Shown here: positions 4,556-48,091 of the stretch, piece after piece
Layout of the letters: every line of letters begins with the position of its first letter
Position numbering within the stretch: the first letter of the stretch is position 1
NCBI GenBank assembly: GCA_009103225.1
Contig: RHPI01003366.1
Location: 62,001-126,000 of the forward strand
From: Chlorokybus atmophyticus
Lineage: Eukaryota; Plantae; Mesostigma and Chlorokybus algae
DNA length: 64,000 nt
Direction: 5' to 3'
Notes under the pieces: model-generated
What the model was told of the DNA's origin: nothing
The model's input: the letters and a program-made list of their open reading frames with translations, nothing else
Database searches by the model: none
Position numbers and translations under genes: made by a program

Positions 4556-7500
4556 TCATGATGCCTCAGCCTTGACTTTCCCTTCCTTCTGTGCTGACTT
4601 CTTCCAGGGGATGGTGCGGGTATCAAAGCCGGCATCATGCAGCTGCTGAGCAATGGTGATTGCGCGAGAAGCCTCCTCCCTATCACTGAAATGCCGCACC
4701 TCCGCACCGACAATCTAGCAAAACACATGCAATTAGCACAAAAAGCACACAGATACCTCACGCAAGGAGCAATTGCCACATCTTCAACCTATTGCATGGA
4801 ATGACGCAACGAGCAACAAGCAACAAAACAAGCAAGTTTTGTGCACAACATAAACAGCAAACTCCAGTACGAGCTGCGCCTCTCCAAGACAGACATGCAA
4901 ATGGCAATGCACTGAATAACTCACCAACTCAGACAAAGCAGAGCATGCACCAACGGCACCCCTACCTGATAATCTTCATGTCCCTTGCCAGCAATGACCA
5001 CTACGTCACCCTCGCTGGCCATGGCCACAGCACCACGAATCGCCTCCTCGCGGCGCGGGACCACATAGTATATATGCCCGCGCTTGTCCTTTTTGCCCAT
5101 AGGAACGCTCATCCCAGCCTGAATGTCACCGATAATAGCCACTGCGCGACAATCACACATCAGGCACCCACCTTTTTTCGTACATCGCTCTCTCAGTGCG
5201 GCAAAAGGCAACATACATGGGTCTTCGGTGCGTGGGTTGTCGGACGTGATGAACGTGACGTTGGCTTTTGCAGCCGCAATGCGTCCCATCATAGAACGCT
5301 TGCCCTTGTCACGATCACCGCCACAGCCAAAGACGCATATAATCTTGTTCGCCCCACACTCGCGCACGCTGTCAAGAAGTCTTTCAAGCGCGTCAGGTGT
5401 GTGGGCATAATCTACAATGATGGAGTAAGGCTGGCCCTCATCAACCACCTCTGCGCGACCGGGTACGCCATCAACGGACTCCAATCCAGCCACAATTGAC
5501 TCCAGCGGCACTCCCAAAGCTATTCCCGCCGCAACCGCAGCGCATATATTGGACACATTCATCCGCCCTGCCAGGAAACACTCGCGTAAGCTGGACCGTA
5601 CAGACCCTTCAACAACAGCCACAGCACGCGAGTGATGATGATACCTACAAGGCCTGATGAGAATTCCAGCGTGCCATTTGGTGTGCGTATCTGCAGGTCT
5701 GTCTCGAACAGAGAAAGGCGTGCACGTGTTGGATAGACGTCTGCACTGGGGTCAACTGTTGCAAACGTCACAACAGGCACCTGCACCGATTGTAGAGCTT
5801 TCATGCGCAGCAGCGTGCGACAGGTACTACCTTTCATCAGGCTGAGCGGCTGCAACACTTGCAAGGACTACTGTACAGCGGCTTACCTTGCAAGCGGCCT
5901 TGAAAAAGGGCGCCTCCCTGTCATCAATGTTTATGACCTGTAACACAACGAGATGTTGGGTAAGCTCAAAGCGCGTGTATTAGCAGGCTCGCGAAGACAA
6001 TGTGTACGCCTGAGTCTCAGCTGCTACGCACCCCACGTTGCCTGCTTGGGTCTGTCAGAAACTCAAACAACCTGGCCTTTGCCGCTCGGTAGCCCTCGAA
6101 CGTGTCATGGAAGTCCATGTGGTCCCTTGTCAGATTGGTGAAGATCTGCACGCAATCCACAATTGTCACGCTGGTTTGCCGAGTGTTTGGCACGAAAGAA
6201 GCATCGGCACTGACCGCCACGTCAAAGTCAACGGCATCGCAGCGCCGCAGCGCCAGTGCATGTGAGGAAGCTTCCATGCACACTGCAGCGCACTGACGCA
6301 CACGCATCAAGTATGCAGAGTCAGCAAGCAACACATAATGTATTCATGCGCACGCAAACATGCACGGTGTGTTTACTTCGTTATGCAGCATGGTAGCTAA
6401 TAGCTGCTGAAGCTTCACGGCATCCGGTGTTGTTTTGTTGGACTTGGACCTGTATTGCAAGGGTAGAGTTGACAACTGCAGTGGCTGGGTTATTGTGCAC
6501 AGCGATAACAACCACAGCAGATGTAAGCCTTGCTCACTCTTGTCCAGGTCGCGTGCTGTAGCCTATGGTACCTATCAACCCGCACCTCTTGCCCCACGCT
6601 TCCATGATACCCCTGCCGATCGGTGAGTTTGCACAAGACACGTATCAACCCTGCAAGTCTCATCATCATTGCGCTGTACGTGCAGAGTCCACATGGCGAG
6701 TGATGGAGGCATGACAGAGGGGGGGCTATACCTCAACAGATAGCTTGTAGTTGTTTTGCCGTTGGTGCCAGTGACTGCAGCCACAACCAGCTTCTTGCTA
6801 GGGTCCCCATAGAAAGCCGCCGCCAGCTTCGGCAGTGCATCTGTTTCCAACAAGCAATGAGTGCACATATGCACAAGCTTGTGCATATGTGCGTGTACCG
6901 TTGATAACCCATGACTCGACAAGGCTGAGGGTCATGTTTACCGCTTGTGTCTGTCATCTTAACAACCGTGGTGATGTTGGCTAGGTCAGCCCCAACGTCT
7001 TCGCAAGTGATGAGTGCGGCCGCCCCCGCTTCAGCCGCTACCCTTGCGTACGCGTGTCCATTCACCGTCAACCCACGCACGCACACAAACGCATCCCCAG
7101 GAAGGACCTGCGTGACAAATATTGATTGCTTTCTTGGACTGGACTGCATCACCTTGCACGTGGACTAAATGGCGACTCTACTTCGCGGGAATCGTGAGCA
7201 ATTCCCGTAATGACGGTTTGATCATCTTCGCCTTCTATTGATTGGGCCGGCGTGCCTGCTGCACTTAGCAGCTCTGCCAGTGTCTGCGGACACAACACAA
7301 TGTTGATAAGAAAATTGTGAATTGCAAGAGGGACGGTTGAGACAGTTGGTGCTAGCGCACGAGTAACAAAATGTTTCTGTGTAAACAGCAGTCCTGCAAC
7401 ACAAGTCCCAAGAAGCTGCATTGCAAGCGCACGGATCTATTGGCAATGCTGCGGTATGTCAAAAGTGCGAGTGCATAAATGCAGTTAGTGTTTTGCATGT

Positions 7501-18302: not shown

Positions 18303-21300
18303 CTAACTCTGCTGCTGGCTTGCCGTCCTGCCAAGCAATGCGTTTATCAGATTTGTTCAGCACGGGTGAGCGTGTGACTAGATGCACATACGCATGCACG
18401 CGGGCGTTCTTGCGCGTGCGTGCATGGCTGTGTTATCCCCACCATTGCTTACCACACTTGTCGGCAGCGCACGGCCTCCCTCCTCACCCCGCGCTTCCGG
18501 TCATCCAACGCCCTACCCAACCCTCTCAACACCTGCACACCACAACACATGAAGGAGCACAGTCACCACACGCACGCACGCACGCACGGCTAGGCACCCA
18601 CTCCCACACGCACACCTGCCCGCGATACGGGTACGTCCCCGCGTGTCCGATGGCTCCCGCGGCCGCGCACAGGCACTGCATCGCCGTCTCTCTCACCCTC
18701 GCGGACGCCTCGAACCTCGCCGCCGCCAGCAGCCTGTCCACGACCGACGCCGCGTGCTGGACCAACAGAGAATGGCTGCCGTTATCGGTGAGGAAGACAG
18801 AAAGGAGAAGGAGCGCGTTGTGGAGAGCCTCCGCCGTTGCGGACGTAAGCGACGACGATGCTTGAGATGAGACGGGAGTGGACAGCACCCGCAACGCATC
18901 CAGCAGAGGGCCCAACAACTGAGACAAGGGGATGCATGTTGCCGTCAGACAGTCTGTACAACGCGCACGCGCACGCAACAAGAACAAACCTGTTGTGCGT
19001 GTTGCTTCAGCACTCCCGGCGGGGTCTCTTTCCCCATCCCAACCAAAGCCGCATACACGGGCCCCTTTCTCTCCTCATCGGCCTCGCGCGCACGTGCCAA
19101 TACAGTCCCGATCATCGTGGAGAAGAACCTTTGCTGATAGAGTGGTTTTACGATAGCGTGGGACTCTCTACTCAACGCGTCGGATGAGGAGGAAGAGGGA
19201 GACACGATGAAGGCAAAGGCGCGCGCGGCTTCGTATGAAAGTGTGGGGTTGAGAGAGGAGGAGGTTGTGACGACATCGAGGAGACGGGTGGCGATTTTGG
19301 TCGTGCGGGGGTGAGCGCGCAGGGCGAGGGATCTCGATATCCATGCGAGGGTGGTGATGCTCTTGCTCGAGTGCGTGTTGGTGGCGGCGATATCGGCGAG
19401 GGCGCGGCTAATATATGTGTCGATGATCTCGCTGTCCCCGCATTTGTTAACTATCGATGCAATGGCGTGGGTTGCAGCATTAACGGGAGCGGTATCGCTC
19501 TCGTCATCACTGCCGCGAGGCAGGGTGATGAAAGCGGTGTATCGATCGACCAGCTGCGATACCAATGGCACCGTCGTGGATATCTCTGGCCGCAAAGCCA
19601 CCACCGCCGCAGACGACATTGATACCACAACGTCCTCGGAGACCTTCGATGACAAAGTCAGTCACACAAGAAGACCAAAAAGATACGATGCAATGCGCTA
19701 TCCCGCGATCACACCTGTGTTTGTTGGAGTAGGTCACACAGGCCTTGCTTGACAACAGCCCGTTGCGAGTCGGGGCCGAGCCGCTGCACACAAGCGCGCA
19801 CGGCCTCGCCTGCCGCTCCCACCCATCGCGAGGACAACGTCGATGATGACGATGCTGATTGTGGTGAAAGCAGAAGACGCAGCGCCAGTTGGCGCAACGG
19901 CTGGTCTTCGGCCTGACCGCACCTGTAATGATGATACCAATCAGCCTTGCAACGAACGTATGCACCTGACGTGTAGCCACATGCTCACGCCGGTATGATC
20001 TTCTGCGCGAGAGACGCCAATACTGCCTCAGCCCGTTCACCATCTTCCACAGACACCTGATGACGAAGTTGAATGAGAGAGAGAGTCAACAACGGGTCCA
20101 GCACGCGTATGCACATACACACAATGAGCCTCCTCCACCTTGTCTGTAAGCGCCGCCAGCACGCGGCGTCTCATTCCCTCCGGCCCGCGCGCGGCCACGT
20201 CCGCTACGATCGCAAGCGCATCGTCGCGGTGATGGGAAGTATTATCGTTGATCCTCGCTAGCGCTGGCACGCAGCAGAGGTCCCACACCGCGCTGCTACC
20301 GTCCTCCCCAACACCTTGACACAAAAGCGGGACACGTAGGTGTGCTGCTCCACATGTGGTTGGGGAGCACAATGACGATATCGGTTCAAAAGGGATACCA
20401 TCGACGCAGGCAAAGAACTCTTTTACTTGCGCATGCGACGAGGGCGTCGAGGGCGGCAGTGCGCTTGTTGTTGTTGTCGTCATGGTTGGTTGAGGATGAT
20501 GTTGACGATGTTGATGATGGCAGCAATAGTGCTGCGAGGGCAGAGACGGCGCGTGTGCGGGCGGCGTGCGGCATGGCGGGTGAAGCGAGCGAGACAGCCG
20601 CGAGCAGACGTGCTGCAGATACTGTGATATCTTCATCCGCAACATCCGCCAGCCTATTGCATGCACACTCTGCTACCTGCGCCATCAGCGCGTCGAAGCT
20701 CGTGTCATCGATGTCATCGCCGCCGTTGTCCACATGCATGCGGTCTCTGCCGCTCGCCGCGTGTGACTGCTTCATGGCCGACAACAGCGACGCCAGCAGT
20801 GTCATCGCTGTGCACATACACACACACATGAGCACACAGTCATGTGGTCAAAGTGAGAAGTCACACACCTGCTGCTTCATGCTTGGTTGTAACAGCATCC
20901 AACACCTTCGGCGCCACAGCCCCAACAATCCACCTTCCACTTCCTTCACTCCCTTTCGCCGCCGCCATAAGCATAATCTCCCCCCCTCGCCTCACATATA
21001 CACCCACATCACTCCCAAGTCCATTAATCACATCCCTCAGACGCAGCGCCCTGGCCGCGGCGTCGATATCGTCCCCGGCCGCCGCCACCATCGCCGTCAC
21101 GCATGCCGCCGCGGCGGGTATATCGGAGTCGGGGGAGGAGGCGAGCTCGAGACTCAGCGCGTCGGCGATATCGGAGGCGTAGCGAGCGATGTCGGGGTGG
21201 AAGGGACAGCGTGTGAGCAGCGTGCGGAGCACATGGAGTGCGCTGGCCTGGCGGGTGTGATGGTGGTGAGAGTGTGACACACGTAAACACACGATAGGTG

Positions 21301-27148: not shown

Positions 27149-29422
27149 ATGGCGGCGGCGGTGGCAGCAGTAACGGCGATGCCCTCCCCAGTAGCGGCTG
27201 CTGCTGCTGGGCCGCAGCGGCTACTCAGCTCAAGAGCGGTGAAGCTTCCACGTTCATCTCCACGTCGCCAGCAGCAGGCGCGTCAGCAGCGGCAGCGTCG
27301 CCCCACCGCCGCTGCTCTCAGCACGCAGCGGCAAGAGCAGGAGGAGGCGCCAGTGCCGTCGTCGTCATCCTCGCTCAGCGTCATCAAGGAGGAGCAGGAA
27401 GAGGATGTGCAACTGGATGTGCTGACGGCCAGGGAGAGGCTGCTGGAGCTGGTGGGACGGCTGGAGCAGGGCAGTCGCGGGGCCGGGGCGGCCAAGGAGG
27501 ACGTGCAGGAGGTCAACAGCCTGGTCGCTGTGCTGGAGGAGGACGGAGGCATGGCGGATCCGGTGAGTGGACCGAGGGGAGGGCTGTGTGTTGGAGGGAT
27601 GGGCATGCATGAGCGCATGCAGCATGCACGCACACAAGCATGTACGTACATTTGTGTTTGATTCGTGCGCGACAGGACAGGCTTGTGCACATTGTGGTGA
27701 GCTCTCGCTGTGTGAGTGCAGGCCAGACATCATCTCTACCAGTAGTATAATCAGTGCAGGCGCATGGCGCGCGACGCATGCCACAGATTACTGCACATGC
27801 CGAGTTCAGGCATTGTTACCTGTGTACCATTGCATGAGTGCGAGCTCTCATCATCACAAAGCGATCACCCTAATGTACTCTCTCGTTCATGTGCACGCCG
27901 CCACCCCCTGACACAATCACCAACACCACAGGCCCTGTCCCGCGCGATCGAGGGTCGGTGGCGCCTTGCTTTCTTGACTCGTCCGGGTTCCGCCTCTCCT
28001 ATCCAGCGCACATTCACCTCCGTTGGCGCCTTCCGCGTGTACCAGGAGATCTCTTTGATCACAGACGACCACACCAACAACCCCGACCCCCGCGTGAGCA
28101 ACGTGGTGGTGTTCGGTGACCGCATCGGCGAGCTTCGCGTGCAGGCGGCCGCGTCGGTAGCACCGGATTCGGGCAGTCGCATCGACTTCCGGTTTGATCG
28201 GGCGGCGTTCGAGTTCAAGTTTCTGCCGTTCAAGGTGCCGTACCCGGTGCCGTTCAAGTTGCTAGGAAAAGAGGCGGAGGGGTGGCTAGATACGACGTAC
28301 CTATCGCCCGCGCTGCGACTTTCACGTGGAAACAAGGTTGGTCCACCCTTCTCTTCGCACGTGCATGTGTGCGTGCTTGTGCCTTCATGTGTGTATCTAT
28401 GTCTGTACCTGTGTTCTTGAGTGTGCGGCGGAGTCTCACATACCATATCAACTGCATACAAAGGTGCTGGCTCTCACGTTTCGTGTACTTCTTCTCCAGG
28501 GGTCGTTGTTTGTTCTTGTGAAGGATGATTCACCAAAGGAGCGCTTGCTGAAGGCCATCGAGACCAGCAGCGGCGTGCAGGAAGTACGTGGGTCTGATGA
28601 TGTACATGAGCTGGACGTGCCCACTCCATGCCCTTGTGGTTACATCTCTGTGCCATAGTGGTGAGTCACTGGTGACATGTTGTGTGCGGTGTCACGAGCA
28701 GGCGATAGATGAGCTGGTGCCTCTGAACCCGAGCAAGGCCCCGGCACGCGACAGACGGTTGAAAGGGCGATGGCAGCAGCTGTGGACCAGCCAGGTTTGG
28801 CTGCCATGTGCTGCATTGATGAATAGACTAAGGTGCATGGACCAGGTCGCAGCAGCTGCTGTCCATTGCCATTAGGCATCCAACTCATCCTGCTTGTTTG
28901 CAGGGAAAGAACGCCAACAGGCTGCAGAAGCTTGTGTCAAATGCTTCCAAAAACTATCAGGTAATTGACGATGAGGCCGGTGACGGCAGGTTACTCAACA
29001 TTGCTGAGGTCGCTGGCGGGATCGCCGTCGTTGCCGAGGCTTCATACAGGTACACGGTACATATGCATACACTTGCAGTATAGTTATAGTGAAGTACATG
29101 CCCACGTCGGAGTGGTGTGAGGTGTCAACTCATTTTCTGCTTTGCAGTGTGTCGAGTTCCAACCGCGTGGATGTTGAGATTGATACGGTGCGCATCAAGC
29201 TGGGACCCCTGAATGTGCCTCTTGGACTGAAAGGGGAGGGCTACGTTGACCAGCTGTAAGTGGCATTTTGTAAGCAAGCAAGACATGCGCTGCATGCATC
29301 ACACTGCCTCTTGTCACCTCTTCAGCACGCTCAGCTGTCATGCTGGCAGGTACTTGGACGAGACTTTGAGAGTGAGCCAGGGCAACAAAGGCAGTGTGTT
29401 CATACATAAAAAGGTGTGCTGA
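27149..29422 (+). CDS. FBN10: Two-domain plastid fibrillin (FBN10/PAP12-like)
   Basis: EGRWRLAFLTRPGSASPIQRTF...PRVSNVV...FRFDRAAFEFKFLPFKVPYPVPFKLLGKEAEGWLDTTYLS...SRGNKG. A second fibrillin domain ends YLDETLRVSQGNKGSVFIHKK. Transit-peptide-like N-terminus. Confidence 0.9.
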
Positions 29423-31603: not shown

Positions 31604-33910
31604 GCGATGCCAATGCGATGCCGAAGGTGCCGTCAATGGAGTGCATCACGTTTCATCTGGTGAGGCTGGCCGACGGGCGCATGCTGGACCGAAGGCAATT
31701 CAAGGACGACTTCATACAGCTACCCAACAACGCGGGAGTGTTCTTGTATGAAGACCTGCTCGCCGTGCTCTCCATACGCTACCAGAGCATATATATCCTT
31801 CAGGTGCGTACACGTACACAACACACTTAGCCACAGGAGGTGCACAGTTTTGGCAGCATCGTCACCGTTCCCCTTTTACTGAGGCGACTTGGACAAGGTT
31901 GTTATCGTGCCTAGTAATTTATGTCTCTGCCCAGATTGCATGTTTGTTGAAAGCCCACTGTGGCTGTGCTTGACATTGTCACAATACTTGTCCCGCATGC
32001 AGGTGCGACCTTCAGGGCAGTTGATTGACATCCACACAATCGGCCCGCACTGTCGAGCGGACGACAACCTCGTCATCAGTCTTCAGCTGGAGGTGCGTGT
32101 CCGCAAGTATGTGTGTGATGCTCCTCACGTGCAGCAACTGACACTCTCACCTGTGGCTCAGGCTGAGGCCAGGCACAATAAGGCCACAACAGATACCAAA
32201 CACTGCACCTTCCAGCGTCTCGCGCCGGCGGGACCAGAGTTGCAGGTTGTCCCGTCCATCGCCAGCGCCGGCACGCAGCCCACCGGGACGGGCCGGGGCG
32301 CTGCCGGGGCTGGCAGAGGGCATGCGGACGGTCTCGATGATCAACACACGCACACAACGACTACTACGGGTCATGCGGGAGGTTTCGCACCTGGCTTTGG
32401 TGCGCACTTTGCGGGGAGGGGAACGGCGGCGGCGGCGGCACCTGCGGGTGGGTGGGCTTGCCGGCAGTTGCTGCAGTTGACCGTTTTGTCGTTGTGCTAT
32501 TGTAGCTGAGTTGGTACAGCAGGGGTTGGGCGAGGGCACTATATGGCAGCATTGATGGCGCATGCCGCTTCGCCACCGGCGCAACCGCAGGTGCGTGGGC
32601 GGTTACTTAATCACTGGCTGGAAAGAGAGCGCGTGTGCGTGCGCAAGTGTGGCCTCAGCTGTGTGTTTGTCACCTCATTTTCTGGTGTCATGTGTTCCAG
32701 GCTCCTGATGGGCCTGCAGCTGAGAACGTTGGCAATCATAATAACAATGCCAACAACCAGCACGCCGCGGCAAATGAAGGTGAAAACGCAACAACGGCAG
32801 CTGTGGGTACCGGCAACCAGCCGCTGCCATCAACAACGGCAACCGATGGCCCTTCAGGCAGCAGCAGCGCGCGTGCTTCCCTGTCTCAGCTGACGGGTCT
32901 GAAGCAACGTCTCCTCGCGTTCGTGCACCGTTCCGCTCTGGCGAGCGGCGGCGGCGACGCGGTGGCTCGCTTCCACTACCACCTGAAGCACTACGAGGAG
33001 CTCGCCATGTGGCGCGTGCAGTTCCTCGACCGACACCACCTTCTAGTGAAGTACGGCAGCGTGGAGGGCGTGTTGCAGCGCGCGCACGACCACGCCGCCG
33101 CTGCGGTACAGAACGCCTTCTTCATGGTGTACAACCTCGACACCACGGAGGTGCTGGGCTTTTATCAAAATGCGTCGGACCAGCTGCTGTCGCTATATGA
33201 GAGATTTGGAGACCAGTTTCGGGCGTGTAATCGCGAGCCGCTCACGTTGAGCTACGCATCGTCGCCGAGCAACAACGACTTCGCGCGAGAGCAGCTGCTC
33301 AAACAGAAGGCAGCAGTCTCGCATGGATCGAAGACGAACCGCGCACAGGTTGTGAAGCGGCTGTTGCAGTCGCTGCCGTTCAACGCGCAAGGCTTCAGCC
33401 CCTCGGCGTATTTCGACCAGTCCCTCTTTCAGTTTGATGAAAAGGTACACGGCATCGGAGGATGGTTGTTGTGCTTGCTCACTTAGCTGCGGAAAACAAT
33501 AACAACATCTCATGTTTGCTTGTGCGCATCAACAGTTGATATCGGCATCGGAACAGCCCAAGCCCTTTGTTGAGCACCCCGTGAAGTTTCTCTCGCGTCG
33601 AAAGCCCAACACTCTCAAGTTCAAAATAAATCCCGGTAAGGAGCGCGTTTGCTCCACGCGCATGCCACCTGCAATGTGATGCCTGCATTTGCGTGTGTGA
33701 TGCCATCCTCTATGCAAGAACACTCGTATCTCGGGTTTAAGTGCAAGGAGATGAACTTGCATCACCGTTGTAGGTTTGGATTCTGGAGCAGCGGATGCGC
33801 GCAATAAGCGGCTCGCGTGCTACATCTTCCATCCCATCTTCCCGTTTGCCATATCGCTGCAGCAGGCTTACATGCAGCCGTCACCTATGAACTTCCATCT
33901 TCGCCAATGA
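30575..33910 (+). CDS. DET1: DET1 (de-etiolated 1, CDD complex); start codon approximate
   Basis: NLLHRLVQRE; YENIVPSHSVFNVDCPDVSYRKFTPDGRYLIAFS; FEGHFTHLY-like FENHFTHLY; LCKEFLL; FLDRHHLLVKYGS; SPSAYFDQSLFQFDEK; C-terminus YIFHPIFPFAISLQQAYMQPSPMNFHLRQ-stop. Confidence 0.95.
31567..31602 (+). repeat. (AAC)12 coding microsatellite giving poly-Asn inside DET1
   Basis: Translates as PDSSNNNNNNNNNNNNSDANA. Confidence 0.95.
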
Positions 33911-44740: not shown

Positions 44741-47700
44741 ATGGGTCGAATGGCTTTACCGCTGCTGTTGACAACGGCGGCAGCATGGATGCTGTCTCTT
44801 GCGCTTCTGGCTTTGTGTGCCTCCTTCGTCACTGGCTCTGGCGTAACGTAAGTCACATGCTTGCCATCTGGCATGCGCAACGCACGAAAGGACAAAACCA
44901 TTGCGTTCGGTGCCCTGTCTCCTTGTGTAGCATGCATGTCAGTCTGCTGTGCATCTCAGCGTGTTCATTGAACTCTGGTCACATTGCCAACTTCAGCATA
45001 GGAGGGCCGTACCGCTCGGATGAATGCAGCACCATCCGGCTGCGAGCCAGTGCGACCGCGGATGCATGTGGCGTGGATCGATTGCTGGCTTGGGACCTGA
45101 ACAACGATGGCGTGTTCGATGACGCGAGCGGCGGCTTCCTCATCATCCACGCCTACAACAAGGGCCTCGGTCCGGGTGTCCACACAATCAGCGTCCGCGC
45201 CACCAGCAGCTCCTGCCCAAACTCTCCTTCCGAAGTGGTGAGCACCACCATCACCGTCACCGTCGCACCCCTCGTCATCACCGCCATAGGAACGTATCCG
45301 GCGAGCAACCTCGGGGTCGCGAGCGTCGAGGAGCGCGTTCAAGTGATTGTGCGGAGCTCTGCAGCAACCTGCGTGCCTGACAACCTTGTGTTAGACTGCG
45401 GTGCAGACAGTGTGGTGAGTAGCGCTTTCATCGGCGTGCGTGCGTGCGTGTAGGCAGGCAGAGCGGTGGTATGTTGGTTGGATTTCATGCACACCTGCTG
45501 TGCGCAGGGCAACGAGGCGGGATACTGTCGATATAGTAAACCAGGCATCAAGACCATCACCGCCACTGTCGCGCAGTTTGGTGCCGTTGCATCGCTCTCG
45601 AGCAACATCACAGTCACAACTTTCTAGTGAGTGCTGTTGTTACACCTGTTGCCTTACGTGTGTATGCAGTGCACTTACGAGCGCGCGCGTATGTGTGTGC
45701 GTTCTGCACGTGCAGCATGGGAGGGCCATACACCGTCGCCCCGTGCGCCACCATCCAACTTGCAGCGCCTACCACCATTGATGCATGCGGGAGACCGCGT
45801 GTCCTTGCGTGGGATTACAATGACGATGGTGTGTTTGACGACAGCACGGGGAACAAACCCTACCTCTATAATGAGCTTTCTCGCCTCGCTCCCGGCGTCC
45901 ACCCGATACGTGTGCAATCCAGCAGCAATCCCGCCTGCCCCGCCTCTCCGGCGGAAGTGCATACAGTCAGCGTGACTGTCACTACGGGTGCCAAGCCCGA
46001 GATCCGTGGCATATCCACATTTCCGGCGAGCAGTGAACCTGTCACCAGCACTCAAGCAAGCGTCCAAGAGGAGATCCGTGTCGTCGTGGTTCCGTCATAC
46101 GTGTTCTGCCTGCCTTACACCGTCACCCTTGACTGCGGCGCCGACAATGTGGTCAGTTGCAACCGTCTTATTGCGGCATGTCGCAGCACTGCCTTCATAG
46201 TTCTTTGCTGACTGTGCGCGCACATGTGTGTACAGAGCAATAGGACGTCGTACTGTCGGTACAGCACGCCCGGACAGAAAGTCATCACCGCCACCATCAC
46301 GCAGAGTGGCGTCTCCGTCTCGCGCTCCGTCAACATCACAATTACTGGCTACTTGTGAGCGTGCTCATGCATGCGTAGTTGTCGTCGCCTTCATCAGGAA
46401 GTCAAACTGATCCCGTCGAGTATGCAGCATCGCAGGGCCGTACTCCTTGCCCCTGTGCTTCGGTGCAATTGCTCTGACAGCCGAGGGGGGCGTCGACGAG
46501 TGCGGCCATATCCGGAACCTGGCCTGGGACTTTAACAATGATGGCGTCTTTAATGACGCAATGGGACCGAGCCCAGTTTTCGATGTTGCCGTACGACAGC
46601 TCCTGCCCGGAGTGTATCCTATAAGTGTACGAGCCAGTAGCAACACCACCTCCTGCCCCGGCTCAGTCCCTATTTATCTCACCACCAACGTTACCATTTA
46701 CGGCACCATAACACCCCCGGAGCTCTTCTCCGTGCACGGTTTCCCAGAAAGCGGCAACGGAAGAGCAACGGTGGGGTCCTGGTGGGAACACACTCTCATG
46801 CACACACTCTCATACACTCAGCTCTCACAACTCAAGGCAACCCACAGGTGGGAGAGGCCATTGAAGTCAACGTTGAGTACTCGACGGCTGGCGGTTGTCT
46901 TCCTTTCAACCTAACCATCGACTGCGGTCTGGACGCCGTGGTGAGAGCGCACAGGTGCATGTTATTCTGTGTACACAATCGCAGCACTGTCTGCCTCAGG
47001 GAGTGACCCTATGGTGCCAACTACAGGGCAACAAGAAAGGATATTGCCAATATGGCACGAGTGGAGTCAAGGTCATCACCGTAACGCTCTCACAGGAAGG
47101 CGTTGAGGTGTCCCTCAGTCTAAACGTGACAGTGACTGCAACCGACCCATCATGTGCAACGTAAGCGTGTGTACTTGCAATCATGCACATGGCGCGCACC
47201 ACTCCGACATCAATCGCACTCAATGTGACCGACAGGGCGGCGTTTCCGGAGGGGAGAGTGCGCGGGAAGCGGGGTTGTTCTGCAGAATTTTGGCCGAAGT
47301 TGCTGGCATGCAACCTCCCCAACAACATCAAGCCATACACCAAGCTCTACGATGCTTTTGCTAGCCGAGCGAGCGAGGATGCGCGGGTATAGATTGATGC
47401 TTGTGTCTTTCTTTGTGGTCTAAGCTACTGCCTGCAGCGCCGTGTATGCAGTACTTATGCATAAATGCCTTATGTATGTGCAGCTCATTGAGCGCCTATT
47501 TGGCAACCGTACCATTTCCCAAGCCTTGCGCATCTCAACCCGTCAGGTACGTTTCTTATTGTGGATGCGTATGTGCGAACACGCGTGCATGTAATGTCCG
47601 CGCACGACTGGCTGTGCATAAGTGCAGGTTTGCATGTATGGACAATCAACTATCCAAGCCAATTGCCTGCGCAATGTTTCATGTGTCTCTTGATTCTCAA

Positions 47701-48091
47701 CACCGTAACGCTTCAGATTGACACCTTTGCAAGGGAAGCCACTGCCGCTCTGCTGAATGCGGAGACAGTGTACTATGCACAGGTTCGGGCTTGTATTACC
47801 CTCTGCTTGTGTTCTGTTCATGCTATGATTGCGATGCATGCATGTGGCACGTGAGCGCTTGGTTTTTGCTTGCTAGTGTCCCCTTTCGGTCAAGCTCGAC
47901 TTTCGCCATGGCTTGTACAATGCGAGCAACATCACAAGACGTAAGTGGACTTGCGGTCGCATCAATGATTGCACGCATGTGTGCCAATTTCTAACACGTC
48001 TCTTTGTGTAGTGACTAATACAAGAAACAAATTTTTCACTCAAAACAATTTTGTGGACGGGTGCCCCCTTGGGACAGTGTGTAGCACTTAG
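44741..48091 (+). CDS. Secreted protein: signal peptide, three tandem PKD/Ig-like double modules and a PDF1-like C-terminal domain
   Basis: Signal peptide MALPLLLTTAAAWMLSLALLALCASFVTGSG spliced in phase to IGGPY. Three repeats of GPY...LAWD[L/Y/F]N[N/D]DGVF[D/N]D...L.PGV[H/Y].I.V...DCG.D.VV...YC.Y...G.K.IT.T. Final exons spliced in phase: GCSAEFW...KLYDAF... / LIERLFGNRTISQALRISTRQ / IDTFAREATAALLNAETVYYAQ / CPLSVKLDFRHGLYNASNITR / LTNTRNKFFTQNNFVDGCPLGTVCST-stop. A probable 5'UTR intron starts at ~44279. Confidence 0.85.

Follow-up and report, generated by a model that had tools for sequence, protein, structure and literature searches.

In a 64,000-nucleotide stretch of the genome of Chlorokybus atmophyticus (contig RHPI01003366.1, positions 62,001 to 126,000 of the forward strand; hereafter the window), we found that the gene Chrsp157S02262, located at window positions 44741-48091 on the + strand, encodes a PKD-repeat extracellular protein in a lineage-specific, streptophyte-algal form. 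The protein is built from three tandem units of ~180 residues, each of which is a di-domain, here termed D1 and D2, and it thus comprises six immunoglobulin (Ig)-like domains. Taking the evidence as a whole, we consider it probable that the product of this gene is a secreted six-domain PKD rod. Chlorokybus lies at the base of the lineage leading to land plants and lives on soil as cell packets glued together in mucilage. PKD-repeat surface proteins are common in bacteria and animals but, to our knowledge, have not been described as a component of plant or streptophyte-algal walls.

The exon chain read from the window is identical, by string comparison, to the public protein jgi/Chlat1/1956/Chrsp157S02262 (EukProt Chlorokybus atmophyticus, 730 amino acids; here P0153). 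All full-length work was conducted on P0153, and the homology searches of the window itself used single exons. A preliminary description of this DNA, made from its letters, had called the protein uncharacterized and its architecture unfamiliar. The gene is indeed uncharacterized, and the matches listed in our searches place the architecture only in Chlorokybus, but it was already a public gene model and has 13 paralogs, and the finding is therefore not categorically new.

Tandem units and their domains

The three units and the motifs by which they had been recognized were confirmed. All of the strings lie on the + strand (Table 1), and the units are 40-49% identical, with mutual tblastn E values of 1e-16 to 4e-32; the repeat similarity is therefore well above chance. 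Each motif occurs in three copies, the only other occurrence in any of the six frames of the window being one stray AGPY at 5590, and tblastn with each exon found no fourth copy of the unit in the window. The cysteines proposed to be paired are six conserved residues per unit, three per half. The count of three PKD or Ig-like modules, by contrast, did not hold, as each unit consists of two domains, D1 and D2, which makes six.

Introns fall at the same sites in each unit. Each unit is bounded by a phase-2 intron that lies one base upstream of the I or M of xGGPY, and every D2 contains a phase-0 intron following DCGxDxV, which in unit 1 splits the domain after LDCGADSV. Given this shared intron pattern and the grouping of all 29 algal D1 domains in a single clade, the units multiplied inside the alga; they arose by tandem duplication as intron-bearing DNA and not by import of an array. 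Unit 3 has one additional phase-0 intron (46771-46847) in the linker between D1 and D2, with no counterpart in units 1 and 2. This intron could use either of two acceptors that are in frame, 46835 and 46847, and the public model takes the second; the pair may represent an alternative 3' splice site, four codons (GNPQ) apart.

On sequence grounds, D1 belongs to the PKD_4 subfamily, which is rich in prokaryotic members, and is recognizable by GGPY and an extended acidic loop, W-D-x-N-x-D-G-x-F-D-D. When a profile built from the three copies (A1) was run against 1.84 billion representative sequences, it gave 1792 matches at E <= 1e-3 and 353 at E <= 1e-10. Among the best 150 of the 1792, the Chlorokybus proteins cover all 141 profile positions, whereas the others match positions ~2-95; most of these are very large proteins with many repeats, derived from bacterial genomes, metagenome-assembled genomes (MAGs) or metagenomes. 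In the nine matches scanned, the A1-matched stretches correspond to Pfam PKD_4 or K319L-like PKD domains (for example, P0073 41-127 against PKD_4 at 33-122, and P0068 322-413 against 314-407). Profile-to-profile comparison of the 29 algal D1 domains with 169 bacterial or metagenomic domains using hhalign gave a probability of 99.65% (E 3.6e-25, 83 columns). The D1 hidden Markov model (HMM) matched 909 bacterial or metagenomic domains, of which 791 have the extended loop, W-D-x-[DN]-x-D-G-x-[FY], and 429 have GGPY. The earlier proposal that GGPY followed by AWD.DGDG.FDD is typical of prokaryotic surface PKD domains agrees with these results, the algal form being AWDxNxDGxFDD. With Pfam, the closest paralog, P0151, passes for both PKD_4 (28.1 bits) and PKD (PF00801, 29.4 bits), and single exons of the window reached only PKD_4, at E 0.14 and 12.7 bits.

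One bacterial relative was a protein of Ilumatobacter (P0017; MFK7919643.1, with FG-GAP and PKD repeats). BLASTP of exon 4, from unit 2, matched several of its repeats with 44-46% identity over 71-73 residues, and these repeats in turn align to the PKD domains of the collagenases ColH and ColG, with WDFDGDGQFDD opposite WDF-GDG. Prokaryotic PKD_4 repeats of this kind (GGPY...WDLDxDGxFDDAxG) share with D1 their length, strand order, GGPY start, extended acidic loop and PG[VS].TI.V strand. The algal D1 differs in its three conserved cysteines, with DACG where the bacterial repeats have DPDGG, and in alternating strictly with D2 in a protein with spliceosomal introns and a eukaryotic signal peptide.

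In the predicted structure of P0153, we observed the PKD-type beta-sandwich fold, with D1 and D2 of unit 1 modeled at residues 34-126 and 125-213, respectively. A Foldseek search with the 730-residue model returned only generic multi-Ig rods (titin, contactins, protocadherins, GhpA and S-layer proteins) at template modeling (TM) scores of 0.1-0.2. These matches therefore indicate a predicted chain of Ig-like domains, consistent with a beads-on-a-string rod, but are unspecific. An AF2 model of exon 4 alone, from three sequences, had a predicted local distance difference test (pLDDT) score of 54.7 and was not taken into the fold search. In the PDB, the three-copy profile matched antibody heavy chains only, at E >= 0.005 and across the junction of complementarity-determining region 3 and the first heavy-chain constant domain (CDR3/CH1), which we judged to be chance, and phmmer of P0153 matched only VraR, at E 0.47. 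A Coat_X match on a single exon (Pfam/NCBIfam) was likewise judged to be chance.

D2 appears to be a divergent PKD-like beta-sandwich with DCG[AP]D in place of WDFGDG, an assignment with weaker support that comes mainly from the predicted structure. Its pattern is ...V.V......C.P....[LI]DCG.D.V, then the intron, then ...YC[RQ]Y...G.K.IT.T..Q.G...S...N.T. When the D2 HMM was run against a set of 152 proteins, its only matches outside the family were two segments of P0129 (384-457 and 880-951; domain E 3e-5 and 5e-4), both of which are bona fide PKD_4/PKD domains. As a lead only, the ten nearest clusters to D2 in protein language-model (ESM) features are all PKD, at 0.89-0.91, those at the top being PKD clusters of animal polycystin-1. 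Comparison of D2 with D1 or with the bacterial PKD profile by hhalign gave a non-significant probability of 1-2%, and we accordingly do not claim that D2 originated from D1. In sequence, the algal protein has no detectable relationship to the PKD domains of animal polycystin-1, SorCS and KIAA0319 above the level of fold or clan; it also lacks their REJ/GPS or Vps10 context and has a different loop signature.

Following the units, residues ~600-720 (exons 9-13, ~140 amino acids) form a tail that is predicted to be alpha-helical, with helices at 609-716. Its cysteine motifs (GC..., ...C.L and GCP...C) are conserved, and in P0153 it reads GCSAEFW...AALLNAETVYYAQ...GCPLGTVCST. The tail of P0153 aligns to those of P0001, P0004, P0151 and P0152. 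When the P0054 tail (residues 226-322) was used to query a word index, it matched only itself. No family in the Pfam copy searched matched the tail of P0153; its feature score of 0.82 against a cluster of PDF1_C (PF27764, the C-terminal domain of PDF1/FOCL1) is a weak language-model lead only.

Gene structure, locus and paralog family

Chrsp157S02262 is an intact nuclear gene of an early-diverging streptophyte alga. Splice sites read from the DNA give 13 exons and 12 introns of 71-170 nt, all GT-AG, and the suggestion that this is a spliced gene for a secreted algal protein was thus upheld, the protein beginning with a signal peptide whose region is modeled as a low-pLDDT helix at residues 15-24. 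The extent first assigned to it, 44741-47160, was correct at its start, which is the ATG of the signal peptide. Its end, however, is a phase-2 GTAAGC splice donor, and the gene continues through five further exons, which encode the helical tail, to the stop at 48091. P0153 contains 11 N-x-S/T sites and 25 cysteines, and neither a transmembrane segment nor a glycosylphosphatidylinositol (GPI)-like end was found in it. The coding sequence has a GC content of 0.57, compared with 0.51 for the introns and 0.53 for the window as a whole. The same window carries exons of a Mur ligase, MMS19, a PAP-fibrillin and DET1 (Table 1), which are ordinary plant nuclear genes and therefore place Chrsp157S02262 in a streptophyte nuclear context.

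Table 1 Features of the Chrsp157S02262 locus and its neighbors, in window positions
Feature	Positions	Strand	Details
Exon 1	44741..44847	+	ATG and signal peptide MGRMALPLLL...; phase 2 at GTAAGT donor; matches P0153 N-terminus
Unit 1, type C	44997..45626	+	Exon 2 (44997-45414) and exon 3 (45508-45626); IGGPY, WDLNNDGVFDD
Unit 2, type D	45716..46354	+	Exon 4 (45716-46151) and exon 5 (46236-46354); MGGPY, WDYNDDGVFDD; LDCGADNV / intron / YCRYSTPGQKVIT
Unit 3, type E	46428..47160	+	Exons 6 (46428-46770), 7 (46848-46940) and 8 (47027-47160); IAGPY, WDFNNDGVFND; IDCGLDAV / intron / YCQYGTSGVKVIT
Exons 9-13	47236-47386, 47484-47546, 47717-47782, 47877-47940, 48012-48091	+	Predicted helical Cys tail; TAG stop 48089-48091
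[GA]GPY motif	45001-45012, 45720-45731, 46432-46443	+	String scan
Acidic loop	WDLNNDGVFDD 45091-45123; WDYNDDGVFDD 45810-45842; WDFNNDGVFND 46525-46557	+	String scan
L.PGV[HY].I.V strand	LGPGVHTISV 45166-45195; LAPGVHPIRV 45885-45914; LLPGVYPISV 46600-46629	+	String scan
Mur ligase C-domain exon	4924-5622	-	E 4e-30
MMS19 C-terminal exon	18948-19655	-	E 1e-30
PAP-fibrillin exon	27764-28417	+	E 2e-22
DET1 exon	32635-33483	+	E 3e-55

The closest proteins among the matches listed were all from Chlorokybus atmophyticus. The D1+D2 unit is present in 14 Chlorokybus proteins (P0001-P0004, P0011, P0026-P0028, P0054, P0055, P0151-P0153 and P0166). In a tree of the 29 complete units, these grouped by position and not by gene, forming five types, A to E, with support of 95-100; the multi-unit array therefore predates the expansion of the paralogs. 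The three units in the window pair with units 3, 4 and 5 of P0151 (support 97-99, 79-85% identity). By this sequence grouping, Chrsp157S02262 is a C-D-E form, and P0151, an A-E protein, is the paralog closest to it. Among the matches listed, a PKD-unit family with this architecture was found only in Chlorokybus; no other eukaryote appeared there, in source-annotated searches limited by length and shared words. A literature search returned nothing relevant on PKD proteins in Chlorokybus or green algae, on horizontal gene transfer or on DxDxDG loops.

NIDO, or nidogen-like, is a domain of the animal extracellular matrix type. Four of the 14 family members (P0001, P0003, P0152 and P0166) carry an N-terminal NIDO domain (PF06119) at E 1e-27 to 1e-31, whereas a Pfam scan of P0153 gave no NIDO match, and NIDO is therefore optional in the family. 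These four paralogs share with P0153 the D1+D2 unit, the unit types and the helical tail, at 55-65% identity. P0153 differs from them in lacking NIDO and types A and B, its type C unit following directly after the signal peptide. NIDO has been noted in the filamentous alga Zygnema and not in land plants (PMC11096116).

Scaffold Chrsp31 carries five family members, among them two with NIDO, and this clustering suggests that the family has expanded locally in tandem. Its members there include P0004, P0011, P0152 and P0166, with the gene numbers S04786, S04846, S04848 and S04899. Elsewhere, P0026 and P0027 (Chrsp120S01795 and S01796) are adjacent models that each contain exactly one D1+D2 unit, of types D and C, and start with MGGPY. 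They are probably one multi-unit gene that annotation has split at the phase-2 introns of the unit boundaries.

Candidate calcium loops and a model of function

A loop of the type D-x-[DN]-x-[DN]-G-x-x-D occurs in all three units (DLNNDGVFD, DYNDDGVFD and DFNNDGVFN(D)) and is conserved in the 29 algal units; in the predicted model of unit 1, the acidic loop lies between strands 65-69 and 83-87. Such loops fit the Ca2+ sites of the integrin/FG-GAP and DxDxDG class. The PKD domains of ColH and ColG reportedly hold Ca2+ near the N-terminal linker and have a short WDFGDG loop. In comparison with these clostridial PKD-like domains (PDB 4u7k, 4aqo and 9lrk), the candidate site of the algal protein is a WDxNxDGxFDD loop that is one residue longer, and a catalytic module is absent. 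The PDB searches identified no solved homolog with the exact WDxNxDGxFDD loop.

In the model that we propose, P0153 would be exported as a glycoprotein, and its six Ig-like domains would form an extended rod. The rod would be part of the wall or mucilage by which the sarcinoid cell packets are kept together. Its three D-x-N-x-D-G-x-x-D loops would bind Ca2+ and the algal-specific cysteines would form disulfides, the two together stiffening the rod. Attachment to wall polymers or partner proteins may be provided by the helical tail or by the faces of the PKD domains, and in the paralogs by NIDO. Alternatively, the rod itself may bind polymer; PKD domains of bacterial enzymes bind polysaccharide or collagen.

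Several points weigh against the reading of P0153 as a PKD rod of this kind. The whole protein scores 26.7 bits against Pfam PKD_4 (PF18911), just below the family's own cut-off of 27. The acidic loops are candidate Ca2+ sites by motif only, and the WDFGDG loop of classical PKD domains is structural, without a bound metal. The suggested role in the wall or in adhesion is likewise deduced from architecture alone.

Origin of the founding domain

That the founding module came from bacteria by transfer is plausible, though not proven. In its specific form, which we regard as possible though somewhat short of probable, a D1 of the GGPY/WDxDxDGxFDD PKD_4 type entered an ancestor of Chlorokybus from a bacterium living in soil, which may have been an actinomycete or a planctomycete; in the alga it later acquired introns, cysteines, a signal peptide, D2 and the tail, and expanded to 14 genes. 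Besides 11 Chlorokybus paralogs, all of the sources that were looked up, a minority of the best 150 matches, are a bacterial genome or MAG or an unattributed metagenomic contig, and no second eukaryote was present among the matches listed in two source-annotated searches. A motif scan of GTDB recovered MAGs of Gaiellaceae, Solirubrobacterales and Bacteroidales, and the extended loop is shared with the large majority of the bacterial or metagenomic D1 matches. In a quick-search tree over 86 columns, which set the 29 algal D1 domains beside 108 from bacteria or metagenomes, all 29 algal domains fell in one clade (Shimodaira-Hasegawa-like approximate likelihood ratio test, SH-aLRT, 99). Their sister, with support of 86 when rooted on an arbitrary bacterial leaf, was P0017 of Ilumatobacter, the protein with 44-46% identity to exon 4. 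However, the direction of transfer is not readable from so short a tree, which has no objective root and includes no other eukaryotic PKD domains, and the source evidence comes from the best 150 of the 1792 matches, a list biased toward giant multi-repeat proteins. PKD domains are, moreover, old and widespread in eukaryotes, and the coding GC of 0.57, the 12 introns and the expansion of paralogs bear no sign of a recent transfer.

Alternatively, the gene may belong to an ancient eukaryotic family of PKD-repeat extracellular proteins that was kept in Chlorokybus, where it grew, and that elsewhere was lost or has diverged beyond recognition; its bacterial likeness would then reflect a slowly evolving PKD_4 core. 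In structure the gene is fully eukaryotic, with intron positions kept in all units; D2 and the tail had no close bacterial counterparts in the searches made, and the nearest language-model neighbors of D2, a lead only, are animal. We nevertheless consider such vertical descent rather unlikely, since no other eukaryote was among the matches listed even though EukProt was part of the searched collection, and a short, fast-evolving domain would not be expected to keep as much as 44-46% identity with bacterial repeats. That the locus is bacterial contamination or a dead, unexpressed repeat relic is highly improbable. Such an origin would account for the bacterial-looking domain type, but the 12 canonical GT-AG introns, a frame open through 13 exons and equal to the public model, the eukaryotic signal peptide, the neighboring DET1, MMS19, fibrillin and Mur ligase genes, and 13 conserved paralogs with type-specific conservation of their units all argue against it, and contamination in particular is excluded.

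In summary, we favor the reading of Chrsp157S02262 as the gene for a secreted six-domain PKD rod. The family to which it belongs, with 14 genes for secreted Ig-rod proteins that bear candidate Ca2+ loops, offers a concrete molecular candidate for cell-cell and cell-matrix cohesion in this alga. It also presents a clear case in which to study the domestication of a domain, possibly a bacterial one, through intron-bounded duplication, the addition of disulfides and fusion with NIDO and the tail. In its fullest form, this account would have Chlorokybus take a Ca2+-binding PKD module from soil bacteria and make it the basis of a lineage-specific system for its extracellular matrix or for adhesion. 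The module would have gained a second, PKD-like domain as its partner, been copied through duplications bounded by introns, and been joined to NIDO heads and a PDF1-like tail, a combination that we consider distinctly unlikely as a whole. If this full account held, Ig-rod adhesion proteins would have been invented independently at the base of the streptophytes, in connection with the multicellularity of sarcinoid packets and with terrestrial life.

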